64,000 bases of DNA from Ascidiella aspersa (lineage: Eukaryota): NCBI GenBank assembly GCA_963924565.1, contig OZ004613.1, positions 6,634,001 through 6,698,000 of the forward strand, read 5' to 3'. Below the pieces are notes generated by a model, which worked only from the letters and a program-made list of their open reading frames with translations, made no database searches and was not told the origin of the DNA. Position numbers and translations under genes: made by a program. Each line of letters opens with the position of its first letter. The stretch's first letter is position 1. Below are positions 1,450 through 39,616 of the stretch, one piece after another.

Positions 1450-3649
1450 GTTATTACGCTTTACTACAACCTCCAACCAATATGCTCCAAACTTTTGAAT
1501 TACATTATTCACTGTTGTAAACGTTTCAAACACGAAACTGTTGTTAATGAAATCATATTTTTGTTTTTTTAAATGAGCTAAAATTACTTACTGCCTACCT
1601 CCGGACGCGGTTCAGTGTCCCCTTTTGGCATTAGTTGCTGAATATTTAAAAAAACAATGTTCTGAGTTGCTTTTCCCGTAATCCAATCGTAAGACAGGAT
1701 GCTAAGCAGGGCCCAAGATTTTCGGCGTAACAGTCATACGAATTACAAATACACTAATAGATTTCGCGTGAGCAAGGAACATCACAAGCATTTTGCTATT
1801 CGACTACCTTTTCGCATAATGTCGGCCACTATAGTATAAATATATTTAAATAATTCTTAGTTGTCGTAATTGCCGTGTTTTATATTGCGAATAAACAATG
1901 GAAATTGGCTGTACAACAAATTTTTGACAATTGGCTAAATAACAAATTTAGTGTTTTTGTGAGGCTTATGTGCCATTTCTTATTAGGTCACTTGCCACAT
2001 TTGGCACGCGTGCCGCGTGCTAGACAACCCTGGCTTGGTGTTATTATGTAGTGGTGGGCCGCGTGATAGCTGTACATTTCTTACACTTAATTTTAAAAGT
2101 TCGTGTTGCTAATAATTTTTATATGGTCTAGGCATGGTTAAGATCCACGTGCCAAATGTGGTCCTGAGAGCATGTCGAACTAAATATTTTGCCAACTTTA
2201 ATGGTTCGCGTGTATACTTTTCGTTTTGTGATATGTTTTACATTATGGTATGTCAGTGCTTTGGGCATCAAACGTCGTGTAATAATTCACGTCAAAAACA
2301 AATATCTTGAATCCACCAGTTTTTTCGTAGTGGTTTTACATAGCGGGCCTTTAATAGCTTTGAAAAGAGTGCTCGACAAAAAAGTATGGCGATCAATAGT
2401 GTTGTAAATAAACGAGTGGCTGCAAACGTAGCTTACTACCGGCGTATTTCTAATATGCTGCAGCTGTATCACTTCAAACTTAGTCCAACAATCAATTTAC
2501 CATTTAAAAAACAAAAACGATGACTAGATGTTTTATATAACAAGATTTTTGTTAGCAAAACAAGCGTGAATTGTCTTTTTTGGGGGTAGCCAACACGTCG
2601 ATTGCCACATTTCACCTGATTTATCGCGTCGAATATGTTTTACGACTAGCTGTCGCGCAAAAGCGAAACATTAAAATGATCATTTGTTGCCTGGACAAGT
2701 CTAATAAAGCGGTCTTTGACGTAAAGAAATAACCTACATCGATGGCTTGGAATACATTAAACGCTCAAAGTGTTTAATAAGTATTATTGTAGCTTTTTTA
2801 CTGAACCAGTCGATCGCGTGTCTCTACAAAATACTTCAGTTGATTGCAATTAAACATTAGCTAGCTACACCTGGTCTATTAGGCATATTGGTAAACTAAA
2901 ATATAAAATACATTTACAGTATATCTTGGCGTAAACAACTGATTATGCTTTTATTACAACATAAAATTTAGGGTTTTCTAACTATTAAAACGCTAAACAC
3001 AATAAGATTCGTTGAATTTAGGTATAGTTTTCGTGGCCGTTACACCTTCAAAACGGCAGGCCAACTTTTTCTCTTATCAAATAATTCTCAATGTGTGTCG
3101 CGTGACGTCATACCCGTGTCGCTTTAAGTTCAGTTTGTGTCGCGTGTCGCTGCAAAATTTAATTGTCTGAAATAGACATTTAAAATATAGTTAAACCGAT
3201 TTTTAATTACCAAAAATGCCTATAGGTACGCCCCTATTAAACATAACTTACAGTTGGTAAAATGCAACTCTTTAAAACTACAAATTTTAACGATTGTTCA
3301 TCAGTTAAAATTTCACCGCCCTCGGGGACTATTTTAAGCTTGGTTACGACTAAACACGCTTACTCACTCCTGCTCCATATTATTAAAATCTATGTTAAAA
3401 ATCTTATACTTGAGACTACAAAGGATTGAGATAACGTAACGTACGAGTATACTTAAACATGCATTTGCATTTATTCGACCCTGTTGTGTATGTTTAATAC
3501 ATGTCTACTAAAATTGTGACATTCAAAAATAGGCTATAAGTGTTTTAACTCAATGTATTAGTTTGTGGTTAGTTACAACACATATAAAACAGGGTTTGTA
3601 CCAATAAACGGACGCGCTGCCTGTAAACAATCCTTAACATTTGAAACAT

Positions 3650-4403
3650 TTAAGCCATAAAACCACCAGTTAATTCAAGTGTCGCTCCATTGACGTAAGA
3701 GCTTTCATCACTTGCCAGGAACAAACAAGCATTCGCAACTTCGACTGGTTTTCCAAAGCGCCCCATCGGAATCATTTCCTTCAAAAATTCCAGTCGTGAT
3801 TCGTCAGCTTTACGTAGAAGCGGTGTATCAATTAAACCAGGGGAGACAGCTTTGCACCTGACACCGTATTCACCCACTTCAATGCACGTCGTCTTTGTAA
3901 AGGCGACCAGCCCGGCTTTACTAGAAGTGTATTCCGAGCCATTTTCAAATCCCACCTTTGCCGCTGTGCTGGCGATGTTAACTATACTTTTATCCAAGTT
4001 TAAGTCGCCGGAGAAACACCTTCGTAAAATTGAAGACGCCATTTAGGTTGACGTCCATTATTTGGTTGAACAAAGCCGTGGTCGTTTCGACGATCGGAGA
4101 CATACGATCAATACCAGCGCAGTTGACTAAAACGTTGCAATTCAGTCCAAAATGAGAGTTTGTAACTGCCAAGGCCTCTGACACGGAATTCTCTTCAGCT
4201 ACATCGCATTGAATCATCCCAACTATGCCTTGATATTTGGCATTCAACTTCTCGTAGGCAGCTTTGAAAGTTTCAACATTCAAATCCACCATCATGACTT
4301 TGCAACCTTCGGCCAAAAAGCGTTCGCAAATAGCTTCCCCGATGCTCCCTGCGGCTCCAGTGACAATGCCCACTTTGCCGTTTAACCTACCAACTTGTGC
4401 CAT
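3650..4403 (-). pseudogene. HSD17B8-like classical SDR, frameshifted
   Basis: TGAAGSIG, NCAG and YTSSK motifs split over two ORFs; about 20 nt deleted near 3988-3992 relative to paralogs, giving a TAA after RRLKLG. Confidence 0.85.
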
Positions 4404-4409
4404 TATAAC

Positions 4410-4601
4410 CTGAAACGAGAAACCTCTTGACAAACAGCATAGTAAGTCGAAATGTCCGAATTGCTCTCAGGGCTGCCATTCTATATTTTGTTCTGCCTCA
4501 CCACCCATAGCATTTCCTCTACGTTTCCCCGCATTGGCGCGTTGATCTGTATCTGCGAGCCATATTATTACTATATAATGACGGTAAGTAGGATAACTTA
4601 C
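4410..4601 (-). promoter_or_regulatory. Candidate 5'UTR intron of the SDR copy
   Basis: GTAAGT at 4601-4596 and TTTCAG acceptor 6 nt before the ATG; the donor context is conserved in the homologous segment at 57661. Confidence 0.5.
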
Positions 4602-4956
4602 ATAAAGCCAATTGGCGAAAACAGTACAAATCAAACGTGCTAAATTGATCGCTGAAATATAACAGGCATCGCCGAAATGTAAAGTACACCACGAATGAGG
4701 TATTAATGTCAAAAACTGTGGGGTATAAACAACGAAAAAAGATTTGATAGGATGGTAAATTTTATAAAAAAAATTTCTCTTTCTTTACGTTTTTTTCACG
4801 TTGTCGTTTTTGATCCCATTCGCTATAGTTGTTGCTTTTGCATTTGACATCTGCAGGTGTTTTATGATTTTAGACCTATACGCTATCCTACTATTTTTAA
4901 TTTTATATTCTACTTTTTAACTATCAATATTGGCATTTTGACATGTTTGTTTTTTG

Positions 4957-5003
4957 TACAGAAACTGACGATGCCTTATAGGCGTAATATATATATTTCT
5001 GTA
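4957..5003 (+). ncRNA. Degenerate minimal type I hammerhead ribozyme (Penelope-like LTR remnant)
   Basis: Stem I TACAGAAA/TTTCTGTA, core CTGACGA, stem II GCC/GGC, GTAA in place of GAAA, palindromic ATATATAT stem III. Confidence 0.6.
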
Positions 5004-6656
5004 AGATTTTAAGAAAAGGATTTTGTGTTTTATCTGTTTTAATAAATAAACAGTCTTAAGATCTTTGGATACGAAGACAAGAATCTTTCTTTTACACTTT
5101 ATCGTCCGCGGGAGATCCTTACTTTTCTAAAGTGTTTCAGCTTGTCTTAAAACATGTCTTAAATACCATTTTGTACATTTAGTTTCATGCACGACAAAGA
5201 AAAACTAACCGGGGTTGCCAAGACTATTCATATTGCATATCAAATTGAATATAAAAAAGCATTACTAAATCACAGGGAAACAGATGCTTTTCGTGCATTG
5301 CTTGAATTAAAAATTACCGGCATGCGAAATTTAACCCATTTTCGGAATGCTAAACTGTGGGCCGGAAAAAACGCGTGCGCGGAAACTTCGATTGATTGAC
5401 AGAAATGACAATTCAAGCTGTGGCCTATATTTGTGCCTGTTTTAGCTGTTTTTTTTTTATCGCAAGTTTATTGACATACCGGCAGCGCAGAGTAAAAAGG
5501 GTCAGGTTTAAAGTGATTTATAGTTGTAAAGGGTGAACAGCAACTACTGACAAAGAACATTAATGCTGCCTAAACTTCGGCCTGCAACATTTCGTAATTT
5601 TAACGATTCGCTTTTCCAAATACCCAACATTTCACATTTGGTTTGCATTTGAAAACTGTTGCTTTTCAATCAATTATTTGATTTTTTGCAGGTAACGTAT
5701 AAAATATGTTCGTGTTGAGGAATAACAAAAGCAAGTAAGGCGACGAAACTGAACCATTAAAAAGGATGCATTTGGTTTAAAAACGAAAATGAAATATTAA
5801 AATGCCACAATGAAGCTCGTTTTTACTACAACTATAAGCGAAAATAAATTAAATTTGGTAAACAAATAAGCACGCGGGAACTTGTCTATATTGGATTATC
5901 AGCTAAAAAATCAATCGAAACTTCAAGAAATGTTAGCTGATTCAACAAATGTTAGCTGATTTTAGCCACGGTATTTAAGCAGGGCAACCCAAGTTATTGC
6001 AGTCAAAATACTAGCCACTAAAGGAGCTAGAGAGTTGTGCACGTTAACCGCAATCAATCGCTAAATAAACAAACAAGTAAGTTAAACGTTTTAGCAATAC
6101 CAAAACATAGGAAAAAATAAGGATTACTGTATGACATCCTAATTGGTAATAAGAAGTGTACAATGTACAACAAAAGCAAATATAAAACGAATATAACGAG
6201 TAACGACCGTGGAAAATGTAGTTGTACAACTGAATTTGATTTCACCGCTTTAACGAAAGCCTGCAACTCAATTTACGGCTAAGGCGCATACAATTTGATT
6301 CAAATTAGTTTTGACATTGCAACAAGCAACAGTGGTATTCAGTTATACTGCAGTGGTATTCAGTTACACTGTGGTACAGAGGGTCCTAGGGACAACCTTT
6401 AAACTATTTCTTAACCGAAAAATGCCAAACAGGATCTAGAATGATTACAATGTTATTCGCCTTGGTACATAAAACAAAATATTACAAACTAACGTAGAGA
6501 AACTAGTTTTGGTCTTCGCACATAGATTTTTGCAATTCCTAATAATTGCATTTAAACTTTCCTATCTTAAAATATTTAAAATGGAAACAATATGACGCTT
6601 TGCTGCAATCCAACTATTATTGTCGTTAAATTTCAAAGAATTATTGCAAGATGTAT

Positions 6657-9600
6657 TTATTGAAGTTGATCAAAGAATTTCGCCAACTCGGAAACGCTCC
6701 TGCTCTCTATTTGCATTGTGCTTTGTGTTGATCCCTGGAAATGCATAGTTTATCGCGTTGAATTTACTTAATTAACCTGCTATGTTATTTTGGGATTTAA
6801 ATAATGAAAGAGCAAAACCTGTCATAAATATGACGTATAACTGCACCAAAAAATAAAAATATTTACCGCCAAATGGTTTAACTTCATGATATTAACGTGT
6901 ACTAGTTTATGGGCTCCGTGAAGGCCTAATTATAAATTAGTTTAAAACTTTAAAATTGGAATACATTTTTCGAAAGAAAAAAGACTAATAAAACATCGCT
7001 TCTCATTGAATGTATTTAAGACACGATTTCAGTTTCATATCTGCTCTAATTTGAAATAAGCATGTTTTTAGGTCTACTAGTTTATGAAACTAAAACTTTT
7101 TTAGGGGTCCGCGTTAAAAAAATGTTTAAGAACTATTGGTTTAATAAATATTGTTGTGATTAACTCAAAACTTTACCTTAACAATTTCTGTGAAAAATCT
7201 ATCAGTAGGCCTAAAGTGAAAAATCTATCAGTGAATAGACCACTGATTATATATAGGCAATTGGCTTTAAAAATCACAATCAAGTGCTCACTAAATTTCG
7301 CCCGCAACTTTACGCATTACTGAGTTAATTTTGATGGTATTTGTCCACACTATAGGGAAGTGGTTCTCAACCGGGGTGCAGCTGCTGCCTGGGGTGCCAT
7401 TTCTAAATCTCAAGGGTGCCGAGAGATATTTGAGAATCTTCAAATATAATGTTTGGTCCACTCTTTCTGTACATTCTAGTGAATTACCTACTGGAAAATC
7501 TTGTGGGGGTGCCGCAATTTATTTGTTATTTCCGAAGGATGCCGCTAGCCATAAAAGGTTGAGAAACACTGCTATAGGGTATATGTGAACAAGCAAGAGT
7601 TGGTTCGCCCAGGTTAAAGGAATCTTTGCTACTTTAACGTGTATATGTTCTTACATGTTCCGCCCCTTCGTCCAAATCTTGTTCCGTGCCCTTTTCTTGA
7701 CTTTGACTTGCTTCTTGTTCTGGTGTTAGTTTCGCAACTTCAATGGCTCGCCTTTTGCGATATAACTGTTTAACACAAATTTGTCAGTGACGTAAAACCT
7801 GCGTCTCAAGTTGGAGACTGTAAAAAACACATGTGCTCTATTAAAATGTTTGAAACTTTGGCGCCTAAAATGCAGAATTTAGCAGAGAGCGCGGATATAA
7901 ATTTTTAATATTTGTTTCATAAATGCCAGATTTCCATAATATCTAAAAACATGCCAATATTTTATATGTTCCCAAAGCGTCCCGTCCCTTTCTAAGTAAA
8001 AGTATGCAATTTAAATCAATTTTGTTGAGTGTAACATAAGATTCACTTTGCATAAGATTTCACTTGTATTCTAAGATTAGCTGTTTTATGACGTAAGGTT
8101 GTGACGCAACTTTTAGGTAATCTTGTGAAATATTTTTATGACTCCGCCTCTGGATGAAACGACGCCAGTTATGGCAAAAATACCCTAAATAAATGTTTTC
8201 TTATTTCGAGTGCTTACTCTTCGTAAGGTTTCCACACCAGTTTTCTTAATGTCACATTCTTCTAGCACCAGCTCTTCTATGTTGTGGGCACAAGTGTTTA
8301 GCAAATCTGATCCTTGTGGACCCAGCTTGTTGTGACTCAGGTTCAACTTTCTCATCTGTACATAAGCATAATGTAAGAATCAAGCGAGTGTCATTTTGCA
8401 CAATCAACTTTTAAATAAAAACACTTAGTGAACTAAATTTGTTTCGGGAAAGAAACGTCGTATACTTGGACGCTAATCCGCTACTCTTGAGCAACAAAAC
8501 TTTATTTGGAATATTCCATTATTGCCTTTTTATTATATAGCACACAATTAACTGCAACAACACACACTTACAGGTCGATTCATTTTTGATATGGCGTCAG
8601 TTAGAGGCTCTAGATTGCAGCTAGCGATTTTGCAGTTCAGCAACACCAGCTGGTAGATGTTGTGTACACTTGTTGCGAGACAACTCAAAGCATATGACTC
8701 CAGTTCGCTGAAATTCAGTTCAAAAACTTCCATCTACAAAGACAAGAAGCTCGAATCGGTTGGTGTTCACCTTTTAAAGAGTTTTCATAACTTTAGCTGG
8801 TCCCGAGCCATCAACGCTAGTAAGGCCATCCCTATCCCAACACAATCCCTTCCCCAAAACACAGCATCCCTGTCCCAACACAAAAACTATATAGACGATA
8901 ATTCAAGGCTTAGGCTAAAACAGCTTGTTGATTCGTCTACTCTAATCCAAGGTTGAGGTAGTGTACTGTTATTTATAGGTTTAAAATGATCGTGGGTCGT
9001 ATGATATAGATAAATTATACTGCTGAGTGACAACATTTTTACTAAACATTTTGCGTTTAAGTATGACACACATCTGATTTGCTCAGAACATGTCATAAAT
9101 CTTTGTAGAAACAGAAATTGAGTTTGTTTTGTCAAGTGTGCTGGAAAATATTCATCCTTATATATACTGCACTATACAAGCTAAAGAAGAAGAGAATGAC
9201 TGGTAATTAAGTTAAAGAAATTCAACAAACTAAGATAAAGGAATTTATTGAACGAGCGTTAACGTTATGCGCCCAAGTTTGGCAAAAGTACAATACAAAT
9301 GACCAGCCTTGTCTTGAATTGTCACGGTTTGCAATACGACCCATGCATGTGCGGTTTGTACCTAAGGATATAGACTCATAGAAATATGTTGCTGCTACCA
9401 GGTAAGTATATACTGAAAATAAGTTATTTTGGTACTTATTTGTTTGCCATACAGACAGTTGTTAAAATATAACAACAGAGCTGGGTGTCGTTGCTCTTAT
9501 CCCTTTTTATTTTAAACGTTGGTTAGCGCATTATTATTTATTTTTTTGTTTGTTTTACTTTGCGCCGTGTTTGTTAAATTCCCTTATGAAGGCATCTTGA

Positions 9601-12600
9601 ATAAGAAGCCGCAACGTCCATGTAAACAAAAAGTACCGAAAAACTTATTTTCAGTATATACTCATATACTTGAAACTGACTTACAGGTTGATCTCTTTGT
9701 GAGATGACTTCAGTTAGGCGTTCCAGATTTGACCCAGCGATGTCGCAGTTGATCAACAACAGTCTGTTCATTTTGCTTGCACTTGTTGCCAGGCAATTCA
9801 ACTCATCTGATCTCAACATGTTCACTCTGAATTCTTCCATCTACATAAAATATTAGGGCATCGAAAGTTTTAAACTTATCGTCAAACCTGATAAATTAGC
9901 TGAATACGCGTAAAACGAAGTTCTACATCGGTTGGCAATGATAGATTTAGATTTAACTACATAGAGAAATAATATCGTCCCTACTATCAATAAATATAAG
10001 CGTATCATAGCACTTAATCATCCAGCTAAAAGCGTTTCAGTCTGTTTCAAATTTTTAATGGCCATTTTAAGAGCTTGGAAACATGACGTTTAATTGTCAT
10101 TTGTAAAGGCAAAAGTTACGGGGTTAAACCCACAAGCGCAAACGGTGACTATACATTTGTTAAATTGGCTTACTTTGTGCATTACTACTCCAGCTACCCC
10201 CAGTTTGATGGGACTTTCCCATGTAAAATAAGTGACCCACTAAGTTGCCTCTATAGGTTGCTCGCGTCCCCGTTTGGCATCTCAGGCCGTTAGACTCAAT
10301 CAACTTGACTGTGTCAATATTGACCGTTTTGACTAAACCATATCAATTGTTGCCCGTACGATGACTTACAGGTGTTTCTCTGCGTGCGATTGCTGCAGTA
10401 AGAACTTCGAAGCCGGACAGATCGTTCGTGTTGTCCAACCACAGGCGGTTTATCTTATGGACGCAGGTGGACAAGGCAGTGAAGTCATCTAATCCTGTTG
10501 TTCTCACACCTACTTGATCCATCTACAAAATAACAAAAATATATTTTAAATAGAGCGCCGTTCAGATAGATGAGGTGTTCTTAAACTTATGCACCGATAT
10601 GTTCGTGTCACCCGCCACTGCTGGCGTACTTGTGTCACTGTCGCGGCTTAAAAAGAGTAGATTCGCTCACTGAAGGAAATACATTGTAAGTTTTGCTAAA
10701 TAGACTGTTAAGAGATAGGTCGTGCCTTGGTCTAAAATGCGTATCCATGTAAAGAAAATATTTCTCATCCATATGAATCTTACTTTTAAAAACAACAAAA
10801 TAAAAAGCGTGTTTTTTTATCGAAAGAATAATTAGGTGAATTCGTTTTATAGTTGTTTTTACAAATATCTTACCAAGCAATAAAAAATGAGTTTTTAAAT
10901 AAATCCAAGTTAAGCAGTATACAATAGCCTATATACTTCCTATATACGTGCTAAAGTTGTAATTTTCAAGCAGTTGTTAACCTGCATGTGGGTTATTTCA
11001 ACGTGATAAGTGCATGGGTGAAGTAAAAGTTTTCATGGCCGTAATTTACAATGACATATTACGCTTTGTACGCTGTTACGCTTTGTACGATCTTAAAAAA
11101 GTGTTTCGATTTTTCTATGGATCTATGTCCGTTAATGCTTTTCCTTATTATTTCAGGCATGAAACAAATCATTCAGTGGCTAGAAAAGTTTTTGACCTAG
11201 CGGACTCCTTTTGGTGTATATTTTATATTTAAAATATGTTCAACCTTAAAACTTCCGACTGCAACGACGCCACCAGGCTTCGCAGAATTTTTATGACGAA
11301 AACCAACAAAATTGCTGTTTGTAGGGTTACTTACAGGTGTTTCTCTGCGTGCGATGGCTTCAGTAAGCACCTTTAAACCAGATATGTCACCCGTGTTGTT
11401 CAACCAGAGACGTTTTATCTCATGAACGCTGGTTGACAAGGCAGTGAAGTCACGTGTTCCAGTTGTCGTCAGACATACTTCCTCCAGCTACAAAATAACA
11501 ACAAGAGATGTTAGAAAAACCGGGGTCCCACATAAATCAGGTGTTTTCAAAAATGTGGTCGGTTCCCGCTATTGCTTTAAAGCTACCCGGTCTTGAGACA
11601 CATTTTCCAGCTACTTCGGGTTTTAACAGTCCATCAATGAATAAAGACATATTTGAAACGTTTAAAATGTTCCCTATACTTTATGCCTTTATCAAACTTC
11701 TGTCAAGGTTTATATGTTGGGTCTGGTAACGAATTTACTGGTTTTATTGCATTTCAAAGCGACGAATTCCAAAAATGTGTCATTAAACTCGTAAACAAAG
11801 GAAAAAGCAAACGGCAAGATAAGAAAAAAAGAAAACGTTAACAAACCTTGTGTTTGGTTTGCGCCATTGTCTCCAGTAACATTTTTAAACCGTTGCCAGT
11901 AAATGTGACTGAAGAAATAAAAGAGACGTTGCCGATGCTGATGACCAGCTCCCTTTGTGTTGCTCGAAGCACGTGACAGAGACTTGACACTTCACTGGGA
12001 AGGATAGTTCCACCCTCTATACGAAGCTCTTCGGGAAGAAAATCAGCCACTTCGGCATTGATTTCTTTATCGTTTAATTCCTGCGCCAAACTGCAAAGCT
12101 TAAACAAATTGGAGTTAAAGCTTTTGCCAGCGTTTGATAAAAGTTGAGATCCAAGCGAATCAATTAGGCCTTTGAGCATTTTTTTCTTGCTGGCAACATC
12201 ATCAGGCGAAATTTTAAAAATAGGCTTTAGCTTTAGTTGGATTCCCGTGTTAAGCAAACCGAAAAGAAACCGAAGAACCATTTCCCACGTATTACTTTCC
12301 AACTTTTTTAACAGCCCAGAAAATGTGGACAGGTCTGTATCGAACAACAGCTTAATTGATGTAAAAAACTCTTGCCACAGAAGATGAATGAAGAAGAACG
12401 CTTTATCCCCTTCCAGTATACAAAGATTAAGGTCGCTGGAAAAAACTTGCATGTTGAGAAAGTCCTCCAATCCTTCACTATCAAGTTCAACGTCATCGAA
12501 ATCTTTCTTTTCGAACATGATTTTGTCATTGAGCATTCCGTTTAAAGCCAGGTCAGAAAGTTGGCGCAAAATTGTGGGGTGTTCTTTAAATTTAGGTGAG

Positions 12601-15600
12601 CGAATACAATCGGACACAAAAGCCGCAAACACATCTGTGAGCGTAAATGTGCCATATTTAGTGCCATGCTTTAGGATGTAAGGTGCGACGGTTTTCGCAA
12701 ATATAGGAAGAAAGCATAGAGCTTTGGCAGCTGGGTTTTGACCAAGTGATTTTGTGACCTTCTCATAATCTTCTTTCTTCGGGCAAATTCGGCGAAAATA
12801 CATATCTTGAGAGCGTTCGTTGAAGCCGATTACCTTGACTACAAAGTGGGGCTTGCAACTTGGATGCAGCTTGTGCAATGCTCCTGGTCGTGAAGTGATG
12901 AGCTTGTGAGCATTGGGAAGAATGTCGCCACGGAGTAAGTTTTGTAGAATGACAACCGGCGTTGCGCGATCGTACAATCCGATCACTGGAGCATTCTTGT
13001 GAAGATTTTTGAACCTAGGTTCGTCCAAACCATCCAGGAAGATAAACAGCTTGTTGGATTTGGAAAGCCTTTCCAGTATTTGGTCATCTATTTCCTTTGT
13101 GTGTTTCCAGTTTGGGTTGGATGACAGCAATTCCAAAACGCCTATTTCTTTATTAAGATCTAAAGTCTTCAAGTATTTAAAAAGCCAATATCCTTCATCA
13201 TCTGCAGGTAATTTATCTACAAGCTCCTTTAGTGTCTGTATAATAGCTGTAGTTTTTCCAATTCCAGCTATTCCAGTCATACCGACCACGTTGCCATGCC
13301 TCTCCACGTAATCGTCATATGCTACTTGATTGCCAAATTGCTCACTTTGGGCTTTCTTTTTTGCTTCTTCTTTTGCAGCAGCAAATAGTTGATTGAGTTT
13401 AAGCATAGTGGAATTGACTTCGTTCTCCCGGAGTCGAGTCAATCCCAAGACACCAAACTCCTCTAATGCTGCTTGGAACTCCCGAATGATGTCAAGAGTA
13501 ACTGAGTTTCTTATTAGACTTCCGATGACCTTTTCAGCTGCTTTCTGGCATGCTTTTTGCCATAATGCTTCTAGCAATAAAAATGATATTTGAAAGCTTT
13601 CTTTAACGCCAAACAATTAGCTTTGAGAGCACACTTTTCTCACATTTGCTGGTTTTGGGCAAAATGCAGCTCACACAAAATTTTTGTTGTGGCTTTATCT
13701 GGAGAATAATGACCAAATTAATAGGGGTAATACTTTACATTAAAACTGTGTTTTTGTAACTGTATTTCTTCGTGATAAAGTGTGTTGTTTTTCAAAACAC
13801 CTAATTAAGTTAGTTTAGCCACGGCGATGTAACAATGCATTATAATTGCTTTAAATAACCCAAGCAAGATGCATTGCAATGCTTTTAAGAGCAAACTCTG
13901 TAAAAACTTATATTATAACTACCATTTGCAAGTTGCAACTATGTTATTTTCATTGGTAAAGTATTCACTGGGTATAGCCTATAACGTGACATTTTGCCTA
14001 ACTGCGTGATTAACCCAACCCAGCCACTTATCAGTTATTAATAATTAATTAACGCCCTTAAGTCGGTTTTACTTCAACGCGCATTACGAGCGAACGTTAA
14101 GCTAAAAATACGGGCCTGTTTAAGCGTAGGCTAGCCACACATCAGTTATTTTTTTCGGGTTTATGTAAAACCCTTTAAAATACACTTAGTTGATATTTTG
14201 ACATATCATAATAACAAACAGCTAAAAAAGACCCAAGAAAAACGAAACGCTAGGTATTTAGAGCATTGTTGGGTTCAAATCAGATATATACAACTATCTG
14301 AAACAAACACTAAAGTCGAGCTAAACCTAAAGCGATAAAACTTTTTTTAATGAGTTTTATTGCAGAAAAAGCTAAGTAATTTAAATTTTGCTATTTCTTA
14401 GACTGGCGGTCGGCAACCTCTTTCTAGTCACGAGCCTAAACCAAACTCACCCCAGCATGGTGGGCCGTACTGAATTTCTACAAACGATTTTGTAATACAA
14501 ACATGTGGCTTTTGAGCATTTAGTCATAAAAACTCTCATTTGTTGACTCAACCATGATTTTTTTGGCAAGTAAGTCTTATTATATGCGTTAAGTAAGTAC
14601 GTTTTAAATTATACGCGTAGTGCGTTAAGTTATACTGTTATTTAAGTTGAAAACAATTTAATTTGGAAGATGATGTGACGCATTGGGTACATCAAAATAC
14701 ATACTGCCTATACTCTTTTTTGATATGTATATCATAAACCTGAGATGTCCAACCCGCGGCCCGCCTGATATTTACGTGCGGCCCACCACTTATTGTCACT
14801 TTCAGTAGCCTTTAATTAAAACAATTGTTTAGAATATCATCAAAACGTGTAGAACGCTCAGTTTTTGATTTAGGCCTTATTTTATTTTTTCTAAGACTAT
14901 AATCGAGTCTAAAGTCGCATTTCAACATCCATCGAACACTTTTTGCACCCATCATTGCTAAGCAAGGTGGGTGTTTTTCTAAATGTGTGTTTTTGCGGAC
15001 CGCTTCAGGAAAATATATCAGCCCAAATATGTAAACTCAATTCTTCACGCTTTGCAATAATAAAAAAAATAATAATTGTGCTCGAGTTTACTCTCGAAGA
15101 GAGGGTGTTTAGAAGTTAAGTTAAAATATATCTATTTATTTTTTAAGTTGGCGCTAACCATTGTAAGATGAGGTCGCTGTTGAGTCTTGAGCCACTACCG
15201 GTACCTGTTGGTTGACAAGGTAATTAAAGACGTTGCCCACAACGTTGTCAATTGGGCCTCGATGACCGTAAATGTCACCAATGTTTACATTCGTGGCAAC
15301 AATTTGACGGTTGTCTGCTGGTGGAGCCTGAGCTGCATTTCCATTCTGTCCAAAACAAAAGTGTTGAAGTCAAATTCGTTGATTCGTTTATAACTGTTGT
15401 AACATTTTGTTTTATCATCAGCAATTATATAACTTTTAAAACAATGTTTATCTAAGGTAAAAAAAAGTCCACATTGGAATTATTTCTAATAGGTGTTCAA
15501 AACTATCACTTTTAATGAAGAAATCTTTAAAATTATTGCCTACATAACTTTTATCCCAAATAGACATATATTTACAAGTTGTAATCATCGGGAAAATGCT

Positions 15601-15702
15601 AATAGAATTCTATAATGAAATATTTTATCATTGTTGCATTGTAATCACCATATTTGGGTCGGGTTGATTTGCTTCTTCGTTTCCGTTAGGGATATCGGCC
15701 AT
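6657..15702 (-). CDS. NLR (NACHT-LRR) immune-receptor-like gene, 10 coding exons, about 971 aa
   Basis: Exons 15702-15649, 15345-15159, 13570-11847, 11487-11335, 10522-10370, 9840-9685, 8733-8572, 8355-8218, 7765-7655 and 6734-6657. All are GT-AG bounded and phase-compatible, summing to 2916 nt with no internal stop. Confidence 0.8.
7358..7571. mobile_element. hAT-type MITE in the last NLR intron
   Basis: TIR AGTGGTTCTCAACC / GGTTGAGAAACACTG with perfect 8-bp TSD CTATAGGG. Confidence 0.85.
8218..11487 (-). CDS. Five phase-0 LRR exons (153, 153, 156, 162, 138 nt)
   Basis: LxxLxL repeats such as IKRLWLNN, MNRLLLINC and MRKLNLSHNKLG; four exons end CCT|GTAAGT and begin after TGTAG. Confidence 0.88.
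11847..13570 (-). CDS. NACHT NTPase exon of the NLR
   Basis: Walker A GIAGIGKTT, Walker B LFIFLDGLDE, sensor LITSRP, LCFLP, winged-helix FIHLLWQEFF; acceptor TTGCTAG (phase 1), donor AAG|GTTTGT. Confidence 0.93.
15159..15345 (-). CDS. NLR exon 2: N/Q/G/V-rich segment with RHIM-like motif
   Basis: GACAG acceptor; open frame NGNAAQAPPADNRQIVATNVNIGDIYGHRGPIDNVVGNVFNYLVNQQVPVVAQDSTATSSYN; phase-1 donor G|GTTAG matches the NACHT exon phase. Confidence 0.75.
15649..15702 (-). CDS. NLR first coding exon, copy 1 (MADIPNGNEEANQPDPNM)
   Basis: CCAAAATGGCC start context, phase-0 donor GTGATT, upstream acceptor CTTACAG at 15735-15734. Confidence 0.72.
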
Positions 15703-18132: not shown

Positions 18133-20702
18133 TTTTCATAAAATTTTGCCGGTAGAACAATTTTACAATTAAAACATTTCTTGTGCAATAGTATTTTGAG
18201 AATTTAAACATTTACTATTTTGAATCACTGAATCAATAAAAACAGACTGCTTACTACTGTTAAAAGTACAACATTTTTATTTAATAAAACATATTTTAGA
18301 AAAAATGAAATAAAATTAAAATATGCCAATTTATGTTTTTACTGATTTAAATCGCACGACGGTATTCTAAAATGTTAATAGCACGAACTATACAGAGAAA
18401 AATGCTGTATAAATGCTGCATTTTGAAGAATTAAATCTCACTATGTTGTTCACCAGGTTTGAGTGGGGCGTGTTAACACTTTCAACAGTGGCGCGATATC
18501 CCCTTATTTGGGCACAACAGGTTGGTAGTAGGCAGTTCTTTTGTGTAATCAGCTTATCAGGGCATATAGGGCTAGCTAGCAGGCACCTTTTCGTAATTTT
18601 GCGGAGCCATCTTTTCGTGAATGCGTTATGACGCAAGCGAACATGACTGGCACTAATATATGAAGGCGACGGTTGCAAAAAGAAGCTAGCAAACATAATG
18701 TACTTGTCGCTGGTTATCGCGAAGCCTTGGGGGAGTCAGAAAAAGCACTTCACGTTGTTGTTTGTGGCTCAATTTCAACTCCATCTAATTGCTCGATGGA
18801 CTTTGTGTTGTCGCATTAAAGGGTTCCTGTGCGCTATTGCGAAATCTCTTTGCGTTGCCAATTAGGCCTCCGTGGTTGCTCAAGATAAAATAAGCACAAC
18901 ACATGGTTTAAAAGATGCAGCTTCTTAACGTCTGTCAGTTACATTTAAACTAACAGAGTCGCTCTAGGTATCCGTTAAGATTAGGGAACCCGCAACAGAC
19001 TTTAATTGATTACAAAGCAAAGTATTAATAATATGCAGTTGTAATTGTATAACTATATCGTTTAAAACCTTTTGTTCACTGACACTTTTCCGTTTAATAA
19101 ATTGCAAAGTTTAAAGTTGTGATCTTACCAAACTAATAGAACACATCAATAAACTTTGCAGATCAGCGCTCGCGAAAAATTTCACCCATAAACTCTACTG
19201 ACGTTACACTCAAATCGGCTCTCTACTGCCACAATAGGCCACGTTAGAGCGAAAACATGACAACGTTAAATGATGACGCATATACGTTTATATATGCAAT
19301 TAGTCGTTATACAAATTCCATTACGTACTTAATTCGCCTACGTCATGCTTTTCGTTTATTCGATAGTCTGGAAAACGCGCAAACGAGGGTTCATACAGCT
19401 CCTGAGTTATTTCATGTAACATCATTTCTGATATAAGCTGCTGCTACCAGGCTAAGTAATATAAATAAAAAAAGTCTCCTCTGGTACTTGTAATTCTTTA
19501 GTCACCCAGGCGAATGTGACTTGCATAGGTTGCCGAAACGTTGGTAAAGAATTACAATCATTTCCTACATCTTAGATGGTATTCGTATTTAGGGATGCGA
19601 TGCTCGATAATTTGAGCAAAACTAGCCGGTACACCGATAGCAAATGACGCCATTACTATAAGCTTATAATCAAAACTGTGGGCATTAAAACGTGCAAACG
19701 TAATGAGTCCGACTTGGGCATGTGAATACCAAATTACGAAACTCAAGGTCGTAAACTGATAATTGTAAAGGTGGAATAGCATATATGGCTGAATATTTTT
19801 CAACCATGTATTGTGGGTAAATGAACCTCCCATGGGTGAATTGCTGAATACACACCTTATTTGAATTACGTAAATTGGTGAAATACAGGCTGTAGAGGCG
19901 GAGTCGGACCCAGGTTAATTTTTTTAGCTGAAGTCGGACTCGGGTTATTCTTAACCGACTCTTATTCTTCGCACTTAAAAACAAACAAAAAATTAAGATA
20001 TTCTGTTCTATAAAACATTCAAACCGTTGTCCATACAAACTGCTGACTGTAAGCTATAACACAAGCTGTCAAAATACTTGTTTCAATTATAAAGATAAGG
20101 AGGTAATTCGGCTAATATATGTACTTAAAATATCTTGCGTGAATCCCTGAAAACTCTTTGGTCAACGGGTCTCAGTTTAAAACCGTTCAATTGAAAAGTG
20201 AAACCATTTTGTAGGCTACCATTTAAAGGCAAATATTATTTGGTAAAAGTAAAACTTCCTATATTTTATCAAATGGGGTTTGTTAATGTGACAGCTTGGT
20301 TATCGAATACGAAAACAGTACACAATATTTATCAACAGTGCCACATGACCGTCTTTTTTTACATACTGAAACGTTTGTTTAGTATAAATTTAATCAACTT
20401 TTGTTTGCACTTGGACAATGCTTAAACAATCCAAAAGTTACGTAGCGTAAGACAATGCTAAACACGTGCACTATGGTATAGTCAAAAAGTCCAACATGAA
20501 ACAACGTTTAACCAAGCTGTGTTTACACTGGAATTATTTTTAATAAGTGTTCAAAACTATCACTTTTAATGAAGAAATCTTTAAAATTATTGCCTACATA
20601 ACTTTTGTCCCAAATAGACATATATTTACATGTTGTAATCATCGAAAAAATGCTAATAGAATTCTATAATGAAATAGTTTGTCATTTTTGCATTTTAATT
20701 AC

Positions 20703-20756
20703 CGCATTTGGGTCGGGTTGATTTGCTTCTTCGTTTCTGTTACGGATATCGGCCAT
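20703..20756 (-). CDS. Duplicated NLR first coding exon, copy 2 (MADIRNRNEEANQPDPNA)
   Basis: Homologous exon in repeat unit 2 with intact ATG context, acceptor and GTAATT donor. Confidence 0.5.
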
Positions 20757-21321: not shown

Positions 21322-24300
21322 GTACAAAAAAAATTTGTTTACCCTATTCATAATTAGACAAATATGGCCTTTTACAAAGGATTATTGTTGGCAAACCAGT
21401 TGTGATTTACAAATGCTGAATGGTTACAAAAAAAACATCGTATAAGTTTGATTTAGGGGTAGAAAATCGTAAAAGTGTGTTACCGTTTTGAAGACTGTGT
21501 GTTCCCAATTACACCTGCCACAAAAAACAAAATTCGCTTGATTTAGTTTAACGTGAAAATAAATGCCAGTGTATTGCTGTGGCTTATCAAGAGTCACTCA
21601 TGTCTAGGGTTGTTTAACATTTTGTTCTGATATCCACGGTTTTTGCAATAAGTATTGTATAGTCCGTTTCTCTGATAAATGACGTCACTACTGTGGCCAA
21701 TTCAACAATATAAATAAAATAAAAATGTCTAAAGATCCAAAATAAAATTGGGACAGATTGTTAAATGTAAAGTAAGAAGAGTATTAGACAATAATTTTGC
21801 ATGAGCGTAGCCTTTGTACAGCTTTTCAACAAAAAGAATGAGACATGGAAAACCTATTTTACGCTTAAATAGGTTATTCTTGCAATAAATTTATTTGAAC
21901 GAGAATTTTTGTCCTAATTCTGTAGCAACTTTTACATACCATTTCACTTATTAAGATGTATTTAAATGATCTTATATGGCATTCGTCTACTAGCTTAAAC
22001 ACAATGCAAAGGCGACAACGTTCAAGATTTCAAGGTTATTTCGTTCAGACCAAACAAATGCAATCAATATGCCTATTTGTTTTTAATAATCACTCAATAC
22101 AAGTCACGTAGTCGTATAAAGTCCACCGAATGATTGTTGACACTTAGATCACGTGGTTTACCTGGTTTAGGCCAGTGGTGCAACTAACAAAAGATATATT
22201 ACAACTCGATTTTAGCATAAACACTACAGTACAATCTATTTAAGTTTAGAGAAAGAATATTTATTTTAAAATTTTAAAAGTGCAATATTGTCCATTAACA
22301 GCAACACGGTATTTCAGTCTTGGTAAATTTAATTTTCAATTGTTCAATCCAGTGCTGTAGAGTTGAAGCCGGATTCCGGACTTGACTACAAGAGTCCCAA
22401 GTCCGATGTGCGCATGCGCAGTACCAAGTTCTGAACTAATAAGACACTACACTGTAAATGGTGGAATGGCTTCATATATGCTGTTTAAGCGATGAACTAG
22501 GTTTACTTTACCGCTTAAATCAGTTACTCTCAAACTTTGTGTATCAAGCCCCACTTATCTTTTCAAAAACGTTCGCGGACGACAAGACTAAGATTTTTGT
22601 TTGAGGATGACGTCACACGTTACATCATAACGCAACGTCATCAAACATTTAATTATAAAAAAACCCGCGTTTGGTTGATTCACAATGGCAACACTTTTGA
22701 TATAAAAGGATACGTTATGCATTAGGTTAAAAAAAACACTCACATTTTCACCTAATTAATGACATTTATTTTGCTTTGCTTAAAACGGACAAAACATAGT
22801 ACAAACGGTTGGATGCTAGAAATATGTATTTATATAGTAAAGTTGACGAAAATGTTTGAGGTTAGGCCATCGCCCGGTGTTCTTCCTTCTAGGCCCAGCC
22901 CTGAACCCTACATTATAGTTTTTTACATTTAACATCACCAGTTTTGTTGTGGGTGCATTTTAAATAATAAGCGATGTTTCAATGAATACGCTGTTACTTC
23001 CTGGCATTGTTTTAATTATAAAATTGCTCTTCCGGCAAATATATGCATTGTCCTGAAGAAGATTGTCCGAATGTGGTCGAAACGTTGGTATTTTCATAAA
23101 ATTTTGCCGGTAGAACAATTTTACAATTAAAACATTTCTTGTGCAATATTATTTTGAGAATTTAAACATTTACTATTTTGAATCACTGAATCAATAAAAA
23201 CAGACTGCTTACTACTGTTAAAAGTACAACATTTTTATTTAATAAAACATATTTTAGAAAAAATGAAATAAAATTAAAATATGCCAATTTATGTTTTTAC
23301 TGATTTAAATCGCACGACGGTATTCTAAAATGTTAATAGCACGAACTATACAGAGAAAAATGCTGTATAAATGCTGCATTTTGAAGAATTAAATCTCACT
23401 ATGTTGTTCACCAGGTTTGAGTGGGGCGTGTTAACACTTTCAACAGTGGCGCGATATCCCCTTATTTGGGCACAACAGGTTGGTAGTAGGCAGGTCTTTT
23501 GTGTAATCAGCTTATCAGGGCATATAGGGCTAGCTAGCAGGCACCTTTTCGTAATTTTGCGGAGCCATCTTTTCGTGAATGCGTTATGACGCAAGCGAAC
23601 ATGACTGGCACTAATATATGAAGGCGACGGTTGCAAAAAGAAGCTAGCAAACATAATGTACTTGTCGCTGGTTATCGCGAAGCCTTGGGGAAGTCAGAAA
23701 AAGCACTTCACGTTGTTGTTTGTGGCTCAATTTCAACTCCATCTAATTGCTCGATGGACTTTGTGTTGTCGCATTAAAGGGTTCCTGTGCGCTATTGCGA
23801 AATCTCTTTGCGTTGCCAATTAGGCCTCCGTGGTTGCTCAAGATAAAATAAGCACAACACATGGTTTAAAAGATGCAGCTTCTTAACGTCTGTCAGTTAC
23901 ATTTAAACTAACAGAGTCGCTCTAGGTATCCGTTAAGATTAGGGAACCCGCAACAGACTTTAATTAATTACAAAGCAAAGTATTAACAATATGCAGTTGT
24001 AATTGTATAACTATATCGTTTAAAACCTTTTGTTCACTGACACTTTTCCGTTTAATAAATTGCAAAGATTAAAGTTGTGGTCTTACCAAACTAATAGAAC
24101 ACATCAATAAACTTTGCAGATCAGCGCTCGCGAAAAATTTCACCCATAAACTCTACTGACGTCACACTCAAATCGGCTCTCTACTGCCACAATAGGCCAC
24201 GTTAGAGCGAAAACATGACAACGTTAAATGATGACGCATATACGTTTATATACGCAATTAGTCGTTATACAAATTCCATTACGTACTTAATTCGCCTACG

Positions 24301-25793: not shown

Positions 25794-25847
25794 CATATTT
25801 GGGTTGGGTTGATTTGCTTCTTCGTTTCTGTTACCGATATCGGCCAT
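25794..25847 (-). CDS. Duplicated NLR first coding exon, copy 3 (MADIGNRNEEANQPNPNM)
   Basis: Homologous exon in repeat unit 3 with intact ATG context, acceptor and GTGATT donor. Confidence 0.5.
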
Positions 25848-26601: not shown

Positions 26602-29199
26602 GTACAAAAAAAATTTGATTACCCTATTCATAATTAGACAAATATGGCCTTTTACAAAGGATTATTGTTGGCAAACCAGTTGTGAGTGATTTACAAATGC
26701 TGAATGGTTACAAAAAAACATCGTATAAGTTTGATTTAGGGGTAGAAAATCGTAAAAGTGTGTTACCGTTTTGAAGACTGTGTGTTCCCAATTGCACCGG
26801 TCACAAGAAACAAAATTCGCTTGATCTAGTTTAACGTGAAAATAAATGCCAGTGTATTGCTGTGGCTTATCAAGAGTCACTCGAGTCTAGGGTTGTTTAA
26901 CATTTTGTTCTGATATCCACGGTTTTGGCGATAAGTATTGTATAGTCCGTTTCTCTGATAAATGACGTCACTACTGTGGCCAATTCAACAATATAAATAA
27001 AATAAAAATGTCTAAAGATCCAAAATAAAATTGAGACAGATTGTTAAATGTAAAATAAGAAGAGTATTAGACAATAATTTTGCATGAGCGTAGCCTTTGT
27101 ACAGCTTTTTAACAAAAATATTGAGACATGGAAAACCTATTTTACTCTTGAACAGGTTTTTCTTGCAATAAATTAATTTGAACGAGAATGTTTTGTCCTA
27201 ATTCTGTAGCAACTTTTACATACCATTTCACTTATTTAGATGTATTTAAATGATCTTATATGGTATTCGACTACTAGCTTAAACACAATGCAAAGGCGAC
27301 AACGTTCAAGATTTCAAGGTTAATTTGTTCAGACCAAACAAATGCAATCAATAGGCCTACTTTTTTTTAATAATCACTCAATGCAAGTCACGTAGTCGTA
27401 TAAAGTCCACCGAATGATTGTTGACACTTGGATCACGTGGTTTACCTGGTTTAGGCCAGTGGTGCAACTAACAAAAGATATATTACAACTCGATTTTAGC
27501 ATAAACACTACAGTACAATCTATTTAAGTTTAGAGAAAGAATATTTATTTTAAAATTTTAAAAGTGCAATATTGTCCATTAACAGCAACACGGTATTTCA
27601 GTCTTGGTAAATTTAATTTTCAATTGTTCAATCCAGGGCTGTAGAGTTGAAGCCGGACTCCGGACTTGACTACAAGAGTCCCAAGTCCGATGTGCGCATG
27701 CGCAGTAGCAAGTTCTGAACTAATAAGACACTACACTGTAAATGGTCGAATGGCTTCATATATGCTGTTTAAGCGATGAACTAGGTTTACCTTACCGCTT
27801 AAATCAGTTACTCTCAAACTTTGTGTATCAAGCCCCACTTATCTTTTCAAAAACTAAGATTTTTGTTTGAGGGTGACGTCACACGTTACATCATAACGCA
27901 ACGTCATTAAACATTTAATTATAGAAAACCCGCGTTTGGTTGATTCACAATGGCAACACTTTTGATTTAAAAGGATACGTTATGCATTAGGTTAAAAAAA
28001 ACACTCACATTTTGTCCGAATTAATGACATTTATGTTTTAATTATAAAATTGCTCTTCCGGCAAATATATACATTGTGCTGAAGAAGATTGTCCGAATGT
28101 GGTCGAAACGTTGGTACTTTCATAAAATTTTGCCGGTAGAACAATTTTACAATTAAAACATTTCTTGTGCAATAGTATTTTGAGAATTTAAACATTTACT
28201 ATTTTGAATCACTGAATCAATACAAACAGACTGCTTACTACTGTTAAAAGTACAACATTTTTATTTAATAAAACATATTTTAGAAAAAATGAAATAAAAA
28301 TTAAAATATGCCAATTTATGTTTTTACTGATTTAAATCGCACGACGGTATTCTAAAATGTTAATAGCACGAACTATACAGAGAAAAATGCTGCATAAATG
28401 CTGCATTTTGAAGAATTAAATCTCACTATGTTGTTCACCAGGTTGGAGTGGGGCGTGTTAACACTTTCAACAGTGGCGCGATATCCCCTTATTTGGGCAC
28501 AACAGGTTGGTAGTAGGCAGTTCTTTTGTGTAATCAGCTTATCAGGGCATATAGGGCTAGCTAGCAGGCACCTTTTCGTAATTTTGCGGAGCCATCTTTT
28601 CGTGAATGCGTTATGACGCAAGCGAACATGACTGGCACTAATATATGAAGGCGACGGTTGCAAAAAGAAGCTAGCAAACATAATGTACTTGTCGCTGGTT
28701 ATCGCGAAGCCTTGGGGGAGTCAGAAAAAGCACTTCACGTTATTGTTTGTGGCTCAATTTCAACTCCATCTAATTGCTCGATGGACTATGTGTTGTCGCA
28801 TTAAAGGGTTCCTGTGCGCTATTGCGAAATCTCTTTGCGTTGCCAATTAGGCCTCCGTGGTTGCTCAAGATAAAATAAGCACAACACATGGTTTAAAAGA
28901 TGCAGCTTCTTAACGTCTGTCAGTTACATTTAAACTAACAGAGTCGCTCTAGGTATCCGTTAAGATTAGGGAACCCGCAACAGACTTTAATTGATTGCAA
29001 AGCAAAGTATTAACAATATGCAGTTGTAATTGTATAACTATATCGTTTAAAACCTTTTGTTCACTGACACTTTTCCGTTTAATAAATTGCAAAGATGAAA
29101 GTTGTGATCTTACCAAACTAATAGAACACATCAATAAACTTTGCAGATCAGCGCTCGCGAAAAAATTCACCCATAAACTCTACTGACGTCACACTCAAA

Positions 29200-35539: not shown

Positions 35540-36313
35540 TTATGCAAACAAACCACCAGATACTTGAAGTACGGCTCCATTAATGTAAGAGCTTTCATCG
35601 CTTGCCAGGAACAAACAAGTATTAGCAACTTCGACCGGCTTTCCAAGGCGACCCAATGGAACTACTGGCTTGATGCCATCAACAGCTGCACTATCAAGAG
35701 CATTCAGCAATGGGGTATCAATTACTCCCGGCATAACCGAATTGCACCTGACACCAAACCTCCCCACCTCAATGCACGTCGTCTTTGTGAAAGCAATCAC
35801 CCCCGCTTTGGAAGCAGCATAAGCAGAGCAATTTCGAAATCCCACCTTTCCTGCAATGCTAGAAACGTTAACGATACTTGCTCCTGTTGCATCCTTGTTC
35901 CCTTCAAGCTCGAGTCGCCGAATAAACTCTCTTGTAAAAGTGAAGACGGCCTTTAGGTTGACGTCCAAAACGTGTTTGCAACTAGACGCGGTTGTTTCGA
36001 CGATTGGAGACATAGGCATGACACCGGCGTTGTTTACTAGAACATTGCAATTCTGCCCGAACTGTTTGCTAACAGCAGTAAGAGCGTCAGAAGCCGAACT
36101 CTCTTCAGTAACATCACATCTAGTCATCGCCACTTGGCCTTCATATTTGGCAACCAGCTTTTCGTAGACACATTGTAGAGTTTCAGCATTCAAATCCACC
36201 ATCATAACCTTTGAACCTTCGGCCAGAAAGCGTTCGCAAATAGCTTCCCCGATGCCCCCTGCGGCTCCAGTGATAATAGCCACTTTACCGTTTAACCTAC
36301 CAACTTGCGCCAT
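35540..36313 (-). CDS. HSD17B8-like classical SDR, intact, 257 aa, NAD-type (MMVDL)
   Basis: TGAAGGIG, NNAG, NVSS, YAASK, RCNSVMPG, C-terminal QVSGGLFA; intronless CDS. Confidence 0.9.
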   Translation of the reverse strand: MAQVGRLNGKVAIITGAAGGIGEAICERFLAEGSKVMMVDLNAETLQCVYEKLVAKYEGQVAMTRCDVTEESSASDALTAVSKQFGQNCNVLVNNAGVMPMSPIVETTASSCKHVLDVNLKAVFTFTREFIRRLELEGNKDATGASIVNVSSIAGKVGFRNCSAYAASKAGVIAFTKTTCIEVGRFGVRCNSVMPGVIDTPLLNALDSAAVDGIKPVVPLGRLGKPVEVANTCLFLASDESSYINGAVLQVSGGLFA

Positions 36314-36664
36314 TCTTAATCTTAGGCACAAAACAGTAGTGCGGATAACCTTAGCAGTCAAAACGACTAAGTTGCTTGTCAGCCTAATTCTAACACAAGT
36401 TCAAAACCGCAGCCAAGCGAGCAAATACCTCATACTTAGCTGATGCTTTTTTTGGTCGGTAACGTAAAGTGCACCCAACCGAATCTAAGAGCCCCTATGC
36501 TTTTGTTTTTATATATTATATATATTTTTTCGTTACTTCGATGTAACAAATGTAAATAAAGCGAGTTTAACATCTTCCTTCTTCAGCTTCCCAAGCAGGA
36601 CGGGAGATAGCAGTGCAATTTATAAAAAATTAGTCACAGTTTAAATATTTATTCGATCAAAAAA

Positions 36665-39038: not shown

Positions 39039-39616
39039 TCAAGCGCTTAAACCACCAGATACTTGAAGTACGGCTCTATTAATGTAAGAACTTTCATCGC
39101 TTGCCAGGAATAAACAAGCATTAGCAACTTCAATCGGCTTTCCAAGGCGCCTCATTGGAATCATCGCCTTTAACGTCTCAAACTGTTCCTTTTGGGTGTC
39201 GCTTATAAAAGCTGTGTTAATTGCACCTGGCGTTAGCGCATTGCACCTGACACCGTATTTTCCCACCTCAATGCACGCCTAAAAGTTGATTGAAGGAAGC
39301 CAGGGTTTTGTCGATGATCGAAGACATAGATGCAATGCCGGCGCAGTTAACTAGGACCTCTCAATTCATTGAGAGATCTCTAAAAAGCCTAAGACGCAGA
39401 ACTTTCTATAGCAACGTCTCATTGAAACTTCGCCACACAGCCTTCATATTTGGCACTCAATTTCTCGTACATATCCTCAAGAGTTTCAGCATTCAAATCC
39501 ACCATCATGACCTTGGAACCTTCGGCCAGAAAGCGTTCGCAAATAGCTTCCCCGATGCCCCCTGCGGCTCCAGTGACAATCGCCACTTTACCGTTTAACC
39601 TACCAACTTGCGTCAT
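39039..39616 (-). pseudogene. HSD17B8-like SDR pseudogene
   Basis: Premature TGA after AKFQ, further stops, and an internal deletion near 39280 removing the catalytic Ser and YxxxK. Confidence 0.88.

Follow-up and report, generated by a model that had tools for sequence, protein, structure and literature searches.

What stands at the N-terminus of an animal nucleotide-binding receptor that has no recognizable death-fold domain? Animal NACHT-LRR receptors (NLRs) are thought to signal via death-folds, and only in fungi and bacteria has it been established that a short amyloid motif can stand there instead; in animals, such N-terminal motifs are known only from a sequence-based report on amphioxus. 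The question is raised by an NLR gene on the minus strand of a 64,000-nucleotide stretch of the genome of the ascidian Ascidiella aspersa (contig 7:6634001-6698000), referred to here as the window. An earlier note, made from the letters of the window alone, had proposed that a small exon upstream of the NACHT exon encodes a RHIM-like putative amyloid motif; the peptide that it singled out (15220-15306) is exactly residues 14-42 of this exon 2 as translated from 15160-15345 on the minus strand. We analyzed exon 2 in the window and in the whole genome (308.6 Mb, 75 contigs). It is very likely a real coding exon that gives a lineage-specific, ascidian-type NACHT-LRR subfamily its N-terminal end, a disordered tail rich in Asn, Gln, Pro and Ala with a single conserved island of about 22 residues arranged as three heptads. 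How this island acts is a separate matter, on which our preferred reading is tentative.

The NACHT-LRR receptor and its N-terminal region

Exons were searched and folded singly. Exon 3 matched the Pfam families NACHT (E = 1.5e-15) and NOD2_WH (1.6e-7), together with NLRC4_HD2 at 8.8e-7 and 29.9 bits, below the 33.1-bit cut-off of that family. Its AlphaFold2 (AF2) model had a predicted local distance difference test score (pLDDT) of 84.6 and a predicted template modelling score (pTM) of 0.83, and the top Foldseek matches of this model were PYD-deleted NLRP3 and NOD2 (E ~1e-22). Five LRR-type exons of 46-54 codons follow the NACHT exon, four of them preceded by gtag and followed by gtaagt. The gene is an animal-type NACHT-LRR, as the earlier note had it. 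Vertebrate NLRP3, NLRP12 and NOD2 are the nearest relatives of its NACHT, winged-helix and HD2 module in both fold and sequence, and vertebrate NLRs likewise have one LRR exon per repeat unit.

In the AF2 model, the 92 residues before the P-loop make a helix, a strand and three further helices that pack against the NACHT domain, with no six-helix bundle. They align within PYD-deleted NLRP3, and their helices stand at the place of the region that is kept in that protein. Pfam models for CARD, PYD, DD, DED and TIR gave no match to exon 2 or exon 3 at E<=10. A six-frame search of the whole genome, made with the Death and CARD models only, placed no such exon in the NLR array (contig 7, 2.4-6.7 Mb); elsewhere in the genome the same search gave about 18 places above cut-off for Death and 3 for CARD. 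The statement that no CARD, PYD, DD or TIR domain is recognizable was borne out by these searches.

Vertebrate NLRs signal through PYD or CARD death-folds, whereas the ascidian gene has a disordered exon of 62 codons at that place. Ascidian NLRs have been listed as being without an N-terminal domain, that is, as NACHT-LRR proteins without CARD (PMC11508797). The window gene has the same architecture; the survey treats the N-terminus as absent, whereas a conserved motif was found here in 62 exons. The relatives of the NACHT exon that databases contain (P0001-P0009) are open reading frame (ORF) calls of one exon each, without N-termini.

The motif exon and its family

Genome-wide, 62 copies of exon 2 were identified, of which contig 7 has 58 (2.40-6.65 Mb), contig 6 three and contig 5 one. 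Exon 2 of the window gene matched no Pfam family at E<=10. Thirty-six copies were read at sequence level. In all 36 the frame is open and the acceptor is AG (gag in copy L035), and a phase-1 GT donor was placed by script in 35; the exons of L034 and L036 are shorter at the 5' end. Just one of the 62 contains an internal stop. A NACHT exon of the same family lies 1.0-2.3 kb downstream in all 14 of the 36 loci for which the sequence is long enough, and exon 1 is also kept upstream of paralogues L004, L026 and L036. With 62 copies in the genome, and frame and splice sites kept in nearly all of those read, exon 2 is more than a chance reading frame. The splice phases given by the earlier note, 0 in and 1 out to the NACHT exon, were confirmed in the DNA by the AG and GT sites, by the in-frame sequence and by the number of copies.

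The array ends with the window gene. Of all its members, this gene has the most divergent exon 2, which is ~45-60% identical to most other copies and 38% identical to L034. The NACHT exon of the window gene is 75-84% identical to those of other array members. Summed over pairs of ten diverse copies, the 22 codons of the core gave a pN/pS ratio of nonsynonymous to synonymous differences of 0.56 (dN/dS ~0.45) and the rest of exon 2 a ratio of 0.89 (dN/dS ~0.85), figures that are indicative only, as the pairs are not independent. The core is under stronger constraint than its flanks, which evolve almost neutrally.

These data also bear on whether exon 2 lies outside the mature functional protein, as an exon that is skipped, a 5' leader, or a relic in decay that looks conserved only because the array is young. 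In favour of this, most copies are recent, near-identical duplicates and the flanks evolve almost neutrally. This explanation is nevertheless improbable. Frame, phases and splice sites are kept where the NACHT exon is only 50-77% identical (L034-L038, synonymous divergence 0.4-1.0), and the invariant residues persist over that divergence, with the one internal stop among 62 copies. Without exons 1 and 2, moreover, the NACHT exon has no start codon at a conserved position.

In an alignment of 17 distinct variants, G23, H28, G30, I32 and G37 (exon residue numbers) are invariant and D24 is present in at least 90%. The core follows the pattern Phi-(N/Q)-Phi-G-D-Phi-x-x-H-x-G-x-I-x-x-Phi-x-G-(D/N)-Phi, in which Phi is a hydrophobic residue. 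It comprises three Gly-spaced heptads, G-[D/P/N]-[I/V]-x4, with the tetrad Phi-(N/Q)-Phi-G in front, and in L034, the most divergent copy, the heptads form a nearly perfect tandem repeat. The earlier note had described a second pseudo-repeat; it is better described as the third of three Gly-spaced heptads. The tetrad reads V-N-I-G in the window and V-N-I-G or A-N-F-G in most paralogues, the exceptions being M-Q-I-G, only in L035 and L036, and L-L-V-G in L034. Variants L034, L035 and L036 are rich in His; the window copy retains H28 alone. As the motif is kept among paralogous NLRs, the loss of conservation that would have counted against the earlier proposal was not seen.

Sequence flanking the core is rich in Asn, Gln, Pro and Ala. 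With the family alignment, AF2 modelled exon 2 as disordered (pLDDT 51) with zero secondary structure, in line with the disordered look that had been ascribed to this N-terminus. The Phi-x-Phi-G start of the core is strand-like, the later i/i+3/i+4 spacing of hydrophobic residues is compatible with a helix, and the 22 core residues include five Gly and one Pro. A prediction of a four-copy complex of exon 2 scored 0.01 and counts neither way.

The motif exon, or a possible relative of it, was found in two more distant settings. At locus L039 (contig 6:31280000-31289999), a motif exon at 325-493 precedes a NACHT exon at 6600-7981, and between them lies a reverse-transcriptase fragment in the opposite orientation (2031-3266). 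This NACHT exon is only 22% identical to that of the window, and its acceptor is in phase with the motif exon across an intron of 6.1 kb. A motif exon in frame with a far more divergent NACHT exon suggests a portable N-terminal module, possibly moved by exon shuffling.

The second setting, L040, is a metagenome contig (JGI24158J21664_10025425) and the sole relative from outside that could be read. It holds an NLR with a NACHT exon (4484-6322) that is 30% identical, and 1.1 kb upstream of it an exon (3271-3376) with the same phases. This exon starts G-N-x-P-P like the family and encodes Phi-x-x-G-D-I-H-x-H within a stretch rich in His and Tyr. Its sequence and phases are suggestive of homology to the motif exon. 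When it was searched against the genome of the window, no match was found.

Contig 7 also contains a second NLR subfamily (0.32-1.68 Mb), which is found on contig 6 as well (30.97 Mb). Its NACHT exons share 59-62% identity with that of the window, and it has at least 18 members among the 76 scored of 293 first-look candidates. The genome search with exon 2 gave no motif-exon match in this subfamily, which may therefore carry a different N-terminus.

Relation to known motifs and possible modes of action

The Pfam RHIM model (PF12721, curated cut-off 20 bits) matched neither the window exon nor the 17 family variants at E<=10. In a six-frame search of the whole genome it picked out 14 places, all of which lie outside the 62 motif exons; the best (20.3 bits, E 0.24) lies in a 27-residue open frame and is unconvincing. 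That search therefore gave no convincing RHIM-bearing partner, RIPK-like or adaptor, in the same genome. Tunicates appear to be without RHIMs (PMC4262963) and RIPK1 was not found in them (PMC12119088), with which the lack of a convincing RHIM here agrees.

That the motif is a true divergent RHIM, homologous to those of RIPK1, RIPK3 and amphioxus, is very improbable. V-N-I-G-D does resemble a RHIM core, all the more so as M-Q-I-G-D in L035 and L036, and a RHIM-NACHT-repeat architecture exists in amphioxus (PMC4262963). The window V-N-I-G, however, does not fit the RHIM core tetrad (I/V)-Q-(I/V/L)-G; H28, G30, I32 and G37 are not RHIM features; and profile searches of PDB sequences returned no RIPK chain. 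RHIM family membership was rejected on the Pfam, PDB-profile and tetrad results and on these residues, and the RHIM likeness of the earlier note does not hold as homology.

In amphioxus BF82280, a RHIM-NACHT-repeat protein, and in other Branchiostoma RHIM proteins, RHIMs replace CARD-like domains (Kajava et al. 2014, PMC4262963). The ascidian gene resembles BF82280 in having a short non-globular motif at the N-terminal place of a CARD-like six-helix domain, a likeness from sequence analysis only. Unlike the amphioxus motif, which matches the RHIM profile, the ascidian one does not, and it has an invariant His and G-G-G heptad spacing.

Parallels in architecture are also found in fungi. The motif of NWD2 comprises residues 3-23, and the second half by which amyloid signalling in fungi and bacteria is defined is an effector that bears a matching motif (PMC5485727). 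The ascidian core (residues 38-60 of the predicted protein, 18 from exon 1 followed by exon-2 residues 20-42) shares with the fungal R0/HET-S motif of NWD2 and with the HRAM, PP and sigma motifs (PMC5485727, PMC9815663) a length of about 21 residues and the extreme N-terminal position on a NACHT receptor, a recognized mark of NLR amyloid signalling motifs. Both are flanked by disorder and rich in Gly, Asn and hydrophobic residues, and for both activation by proximity on oligomerization is proposed. In contrast to the fungal systems, where the matching C-terminal motif is found on an adjacent effector gene, none was found in the ascidian genome. There is also no profile similarity, and the fungal receptors carry WD, TPR or ANK repeats as against the LRR of the window gene. 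Bacterial amyloid signalling sequences (BASS; bioRxiv 10.1101/2020.01.06.895854), compared by description only, likewise are short, stand at the N-terminus of STAND/NLR receptors and occur in multi-gene families; they are defined by receptor/effector gene pairs, whereas none was seen at the ascidian family.

Most probably the exon supplies a lineage-specific N-terminal tail for signalling, which either associates with itself or recruits a partner once the NACHT domains oligomerize. We tentatively predict the former, with the tails forming a beta-rich stack that would take the role of a filament of CARD or PYD. The tail would be unstructured while the receptor is a resting monomer. Ligand-driven NACHT oligomerization would bring several tails close together, and the gathered motifs would then self-associate into an ordered beta-rich stack, either amyloid-like or with each subunit giving one rung of 21 residues, like the R0 unit of NWD2. 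Downstream signalling would be nucleated by this stack rather than by a death-fold filament. In function the motif would accordingly be analogous to motifs of the RHIM and HET-s type without being a detectable homologue of them, and its amyloid-like mode is plausible, though short of an even chance.

Several features would favour self-association: the exon structure kept in 36 copies, the invariant heptad residues, the constraint on the core and an array free of Death and CARD exons. The predicted disorder of the monomer would also fit, as signalling amyloid motifs are likewise disordered. The position of a motif of ~21-25 residues ahead of the NOD module matches the fungal NLR amyloid architecture and that of the amphioxus RHIM-NACHT-repeat protein. 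The L040 exon and the apparently portable module at L039 point the same way. Three heptads make 21 residues, which is the rung length of NWD2 R0/HET-s (PMC5485727), a correspondence that we treat as analogy only.

Other observations weigh against an amyloid-like stack. The 17 variants had no match to HET-s or any other amyloid motif family in Pfam. The PDB is expected to include the fibril chains of RIPK1/RIPK3 and HET-s. Profile searches of PDB sequences nevertheless gave only Cas1 (E 0.8) for the whole exon and nothing for the core, with no RIPK1, RIPK3, HET-s or HELLF chain. The earlier note had also proposed a search for effectors that share the motif; protein, profile and pattern searches of the genome found only the 62 NLR exons, of which the window contains one. 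As these searches gave no further protein with the motif, receptor-to-effector templating has no visible partner. A degenerate DNA pattern of the motif matched 17 places outside the family, as against 31 for the reversed control. Of the three heptads, the distant L040 exon has just the first, the second and third glycines being absent. In an in-register cross-beta core it would be unusual to find an invariant His, a near-invariant Asp and, as in heptad 2 of most copies, a Pro. The i/i+3/i+4 spacing, together with a coiled-coil look-alike described below, fits a helical heptad as well as a beta rung. Finally, the peak of the hydrophobic moment over the 17 variants depends on the scale (~150 degrees with Eisenberg, ~110 degrees with Fauchere-Pliska, z<=2.6), which leaves helix and strand undecided.

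Matches of the degenerate pattern outside the NLR family, in number within chance expectation, include contig 3:28222690-28222719 (minus strand) and contig 4:5413164-5413193 and 5424211-5424240 (plus strand), which would read G-D-I-Y-T-H-A-G-T-I and G-N-I-H-R-H-P-G-N-I.

The absence of a second protein with the motif is what would be expected if it were instead a short linear motif for docking to a folded domain in an adaptor or enzyme, possibly in a metal- or pH-dependent manner via Asp and His, with NACHT oligomerization raising local valency. Such a motif is possible if on balance unlikely, and is nearly as likely as the amyloid reading. The invariant H28, the near-invariant D24 and extra His residues in L034, L035, L036 and L040 suggest chemistry over packing; the predicted disorder of the tail and the single heptad of L040 fit as well. 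Set against this, 22 constrained residues with three evenly spaced invariant Gly exceed the usual docking motif in length and regularity, H28 is the only His left in the window copy, and there is no candidate for a partner.

Among 1.84 billion representative proteins, a profile search gave no true relative of the motif, only three weak matches to bacterial repeat proteins. The sole match at E<1e-5 was to the stalk heptads of trimeric autotransporters, G-[D/N]-V-T-T-L-Q, which belong to coiled-coil families in Pfam. The others were a bacterial S8 peptidase (P0122) with an unannotated array of G-D-I-D-A-F-Y heptads and a Listeria-Bacteroides repeat. In P0122, residues ~40-430 hold about fifty tandem heptads, G-[D/T]-I-D-[A/P]-F-[Y/W], which have no Pfam family and resemble the L034 variant. 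As kin of the motif these bacterial proteins were rejected, being look-alikes in periodicity and composition. Look-alikes in the Protein Atlas all scored <0.9, represent Rossmann-type glycine motifs and were judged meaningless.

The autotransporter match (G-[D/N]-V-x-x-L-x) bears on a further possibility, that the motif becomes helical only in the oligomer, as a coiled-coil bundle or a membrane-active amphipathic helix, by analogy with the N-terminal helices of other receptors. Hydrophobic residues at heptad positions 3 and 6 (I/V25, H28; I32, L/V35; V39, Y42) would suit such an element. It is unlikely all the same: the Gly and Pro content of the core speaks against it, AF2 predicts no helix, the helical hydrophobic moment does not exceed the level in shuffled sequence (z<=2, scale-dependent), and no CaaX exon was found for the window gene in the region searched, 4400-8400.

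Returning to self-association, its strongest form is rather doubtful: that the island represents a new animal family of amyloid or single-rung beta-solenoid signalling motifs, unrelated in sequence to RHIM, by which some 60 chordate NLRs signal through prion-like nucleation without a death-fold, with polymerization perhaps gated by His protonation or a metal ion. Shown here is a family of 62 exons that keeps a constrained motif of ~22 residues without a relative among the proteins searched. If the motif polymerizes, it would define a new animal signalling-amyloid family; if not, it marks an adaptor interface. The former would mean death-fold-independent NLR signalling in chordates outside the vertebrates, in a lineage thought to have lost RHIM signalling. 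In either case the motif opens a concrete and cheap peptide-level test of such signalling in non-vertebrate chordates.

Gene model and surroundings

The exons of the window gene are listed in Table 1. Exon 1 is predicted to join exon 2 in phase 0, and exon 2 the NACHT exon in phase 1. The contigs of run X1, an independent contig set, match 15013-15504 with zero differences; because they read through introns, run X1 is genomic DNA. The 3' end of the gene is not fixed and a further 3' exon is possible, since a candidate donor precedes the stop of the last LRR-type exon. Between 4400 and 8400, a search for a polybasic CaaX exon found none.

Table 1. Features of the NLR gene in the window; a slash marks the exon boundary.
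Feature	Position	Strand	Details
Exon 1, ATG start exon	15649..15702	-	18 codons (MADI...NM); donor ATG/gt (ATG/gtgatt), phase 0
Exon 2, motif exon	15159..15345	-	187 nt (62 codons + 1 nt); acceptor cag/ (ggacag/), donor /gttagc; phase 0 in, phase 1 out
Conserved core in exon 2	15220..15288	-	Exon residues 20-42; heptads starting G23, G30, G37
Exon 3, pre-NACHT helical region, NACHT, winged helix and HD2	11847..13570	-	Acceptor ttgctag/ at 13570; donor AAG/gtttgt, phase 0
LRR exon 1	11335..11487	-	51 codons; gtag/.../gtaagt; sequence read directly
LRR exon 2	10370..10522	-	51 codons
LRR exon 3	9685..9840	-	52 codons
LRR exon 4	8572..8733	-	54 codons
Last LRR-type exon seen	8185..8355	-	Ends at stop 8185, or possible donor AGA/gtaagc at ~8218

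The ATG exon is present in three tandem copies on the minus strand (15649-15702, 20706-20756 and 25794-25847), spaced by ~5.05 kb and with peptides 83-88% identical; these copies may serve as alternative first exons or as promoters. Unlike the tripled ATG exon, exon 2 and the NACHT exon are single in the window. An ORF of 102 codons is repeated once per 5-kb unit (18388-18696, 23346-23654 and 28373-28681). No long ORF was found between exon 1 and the next gene, a short-chain dehydrogenase/reductase (SDR) at 35.5 kb. SDR-like ORFs were observed on the minus strand on both sides of the NLR gene (3650-4433, 35540-36361 and 39039-39661), and the window is therefore the edge of the NLR array beside an SDR gene cluster.

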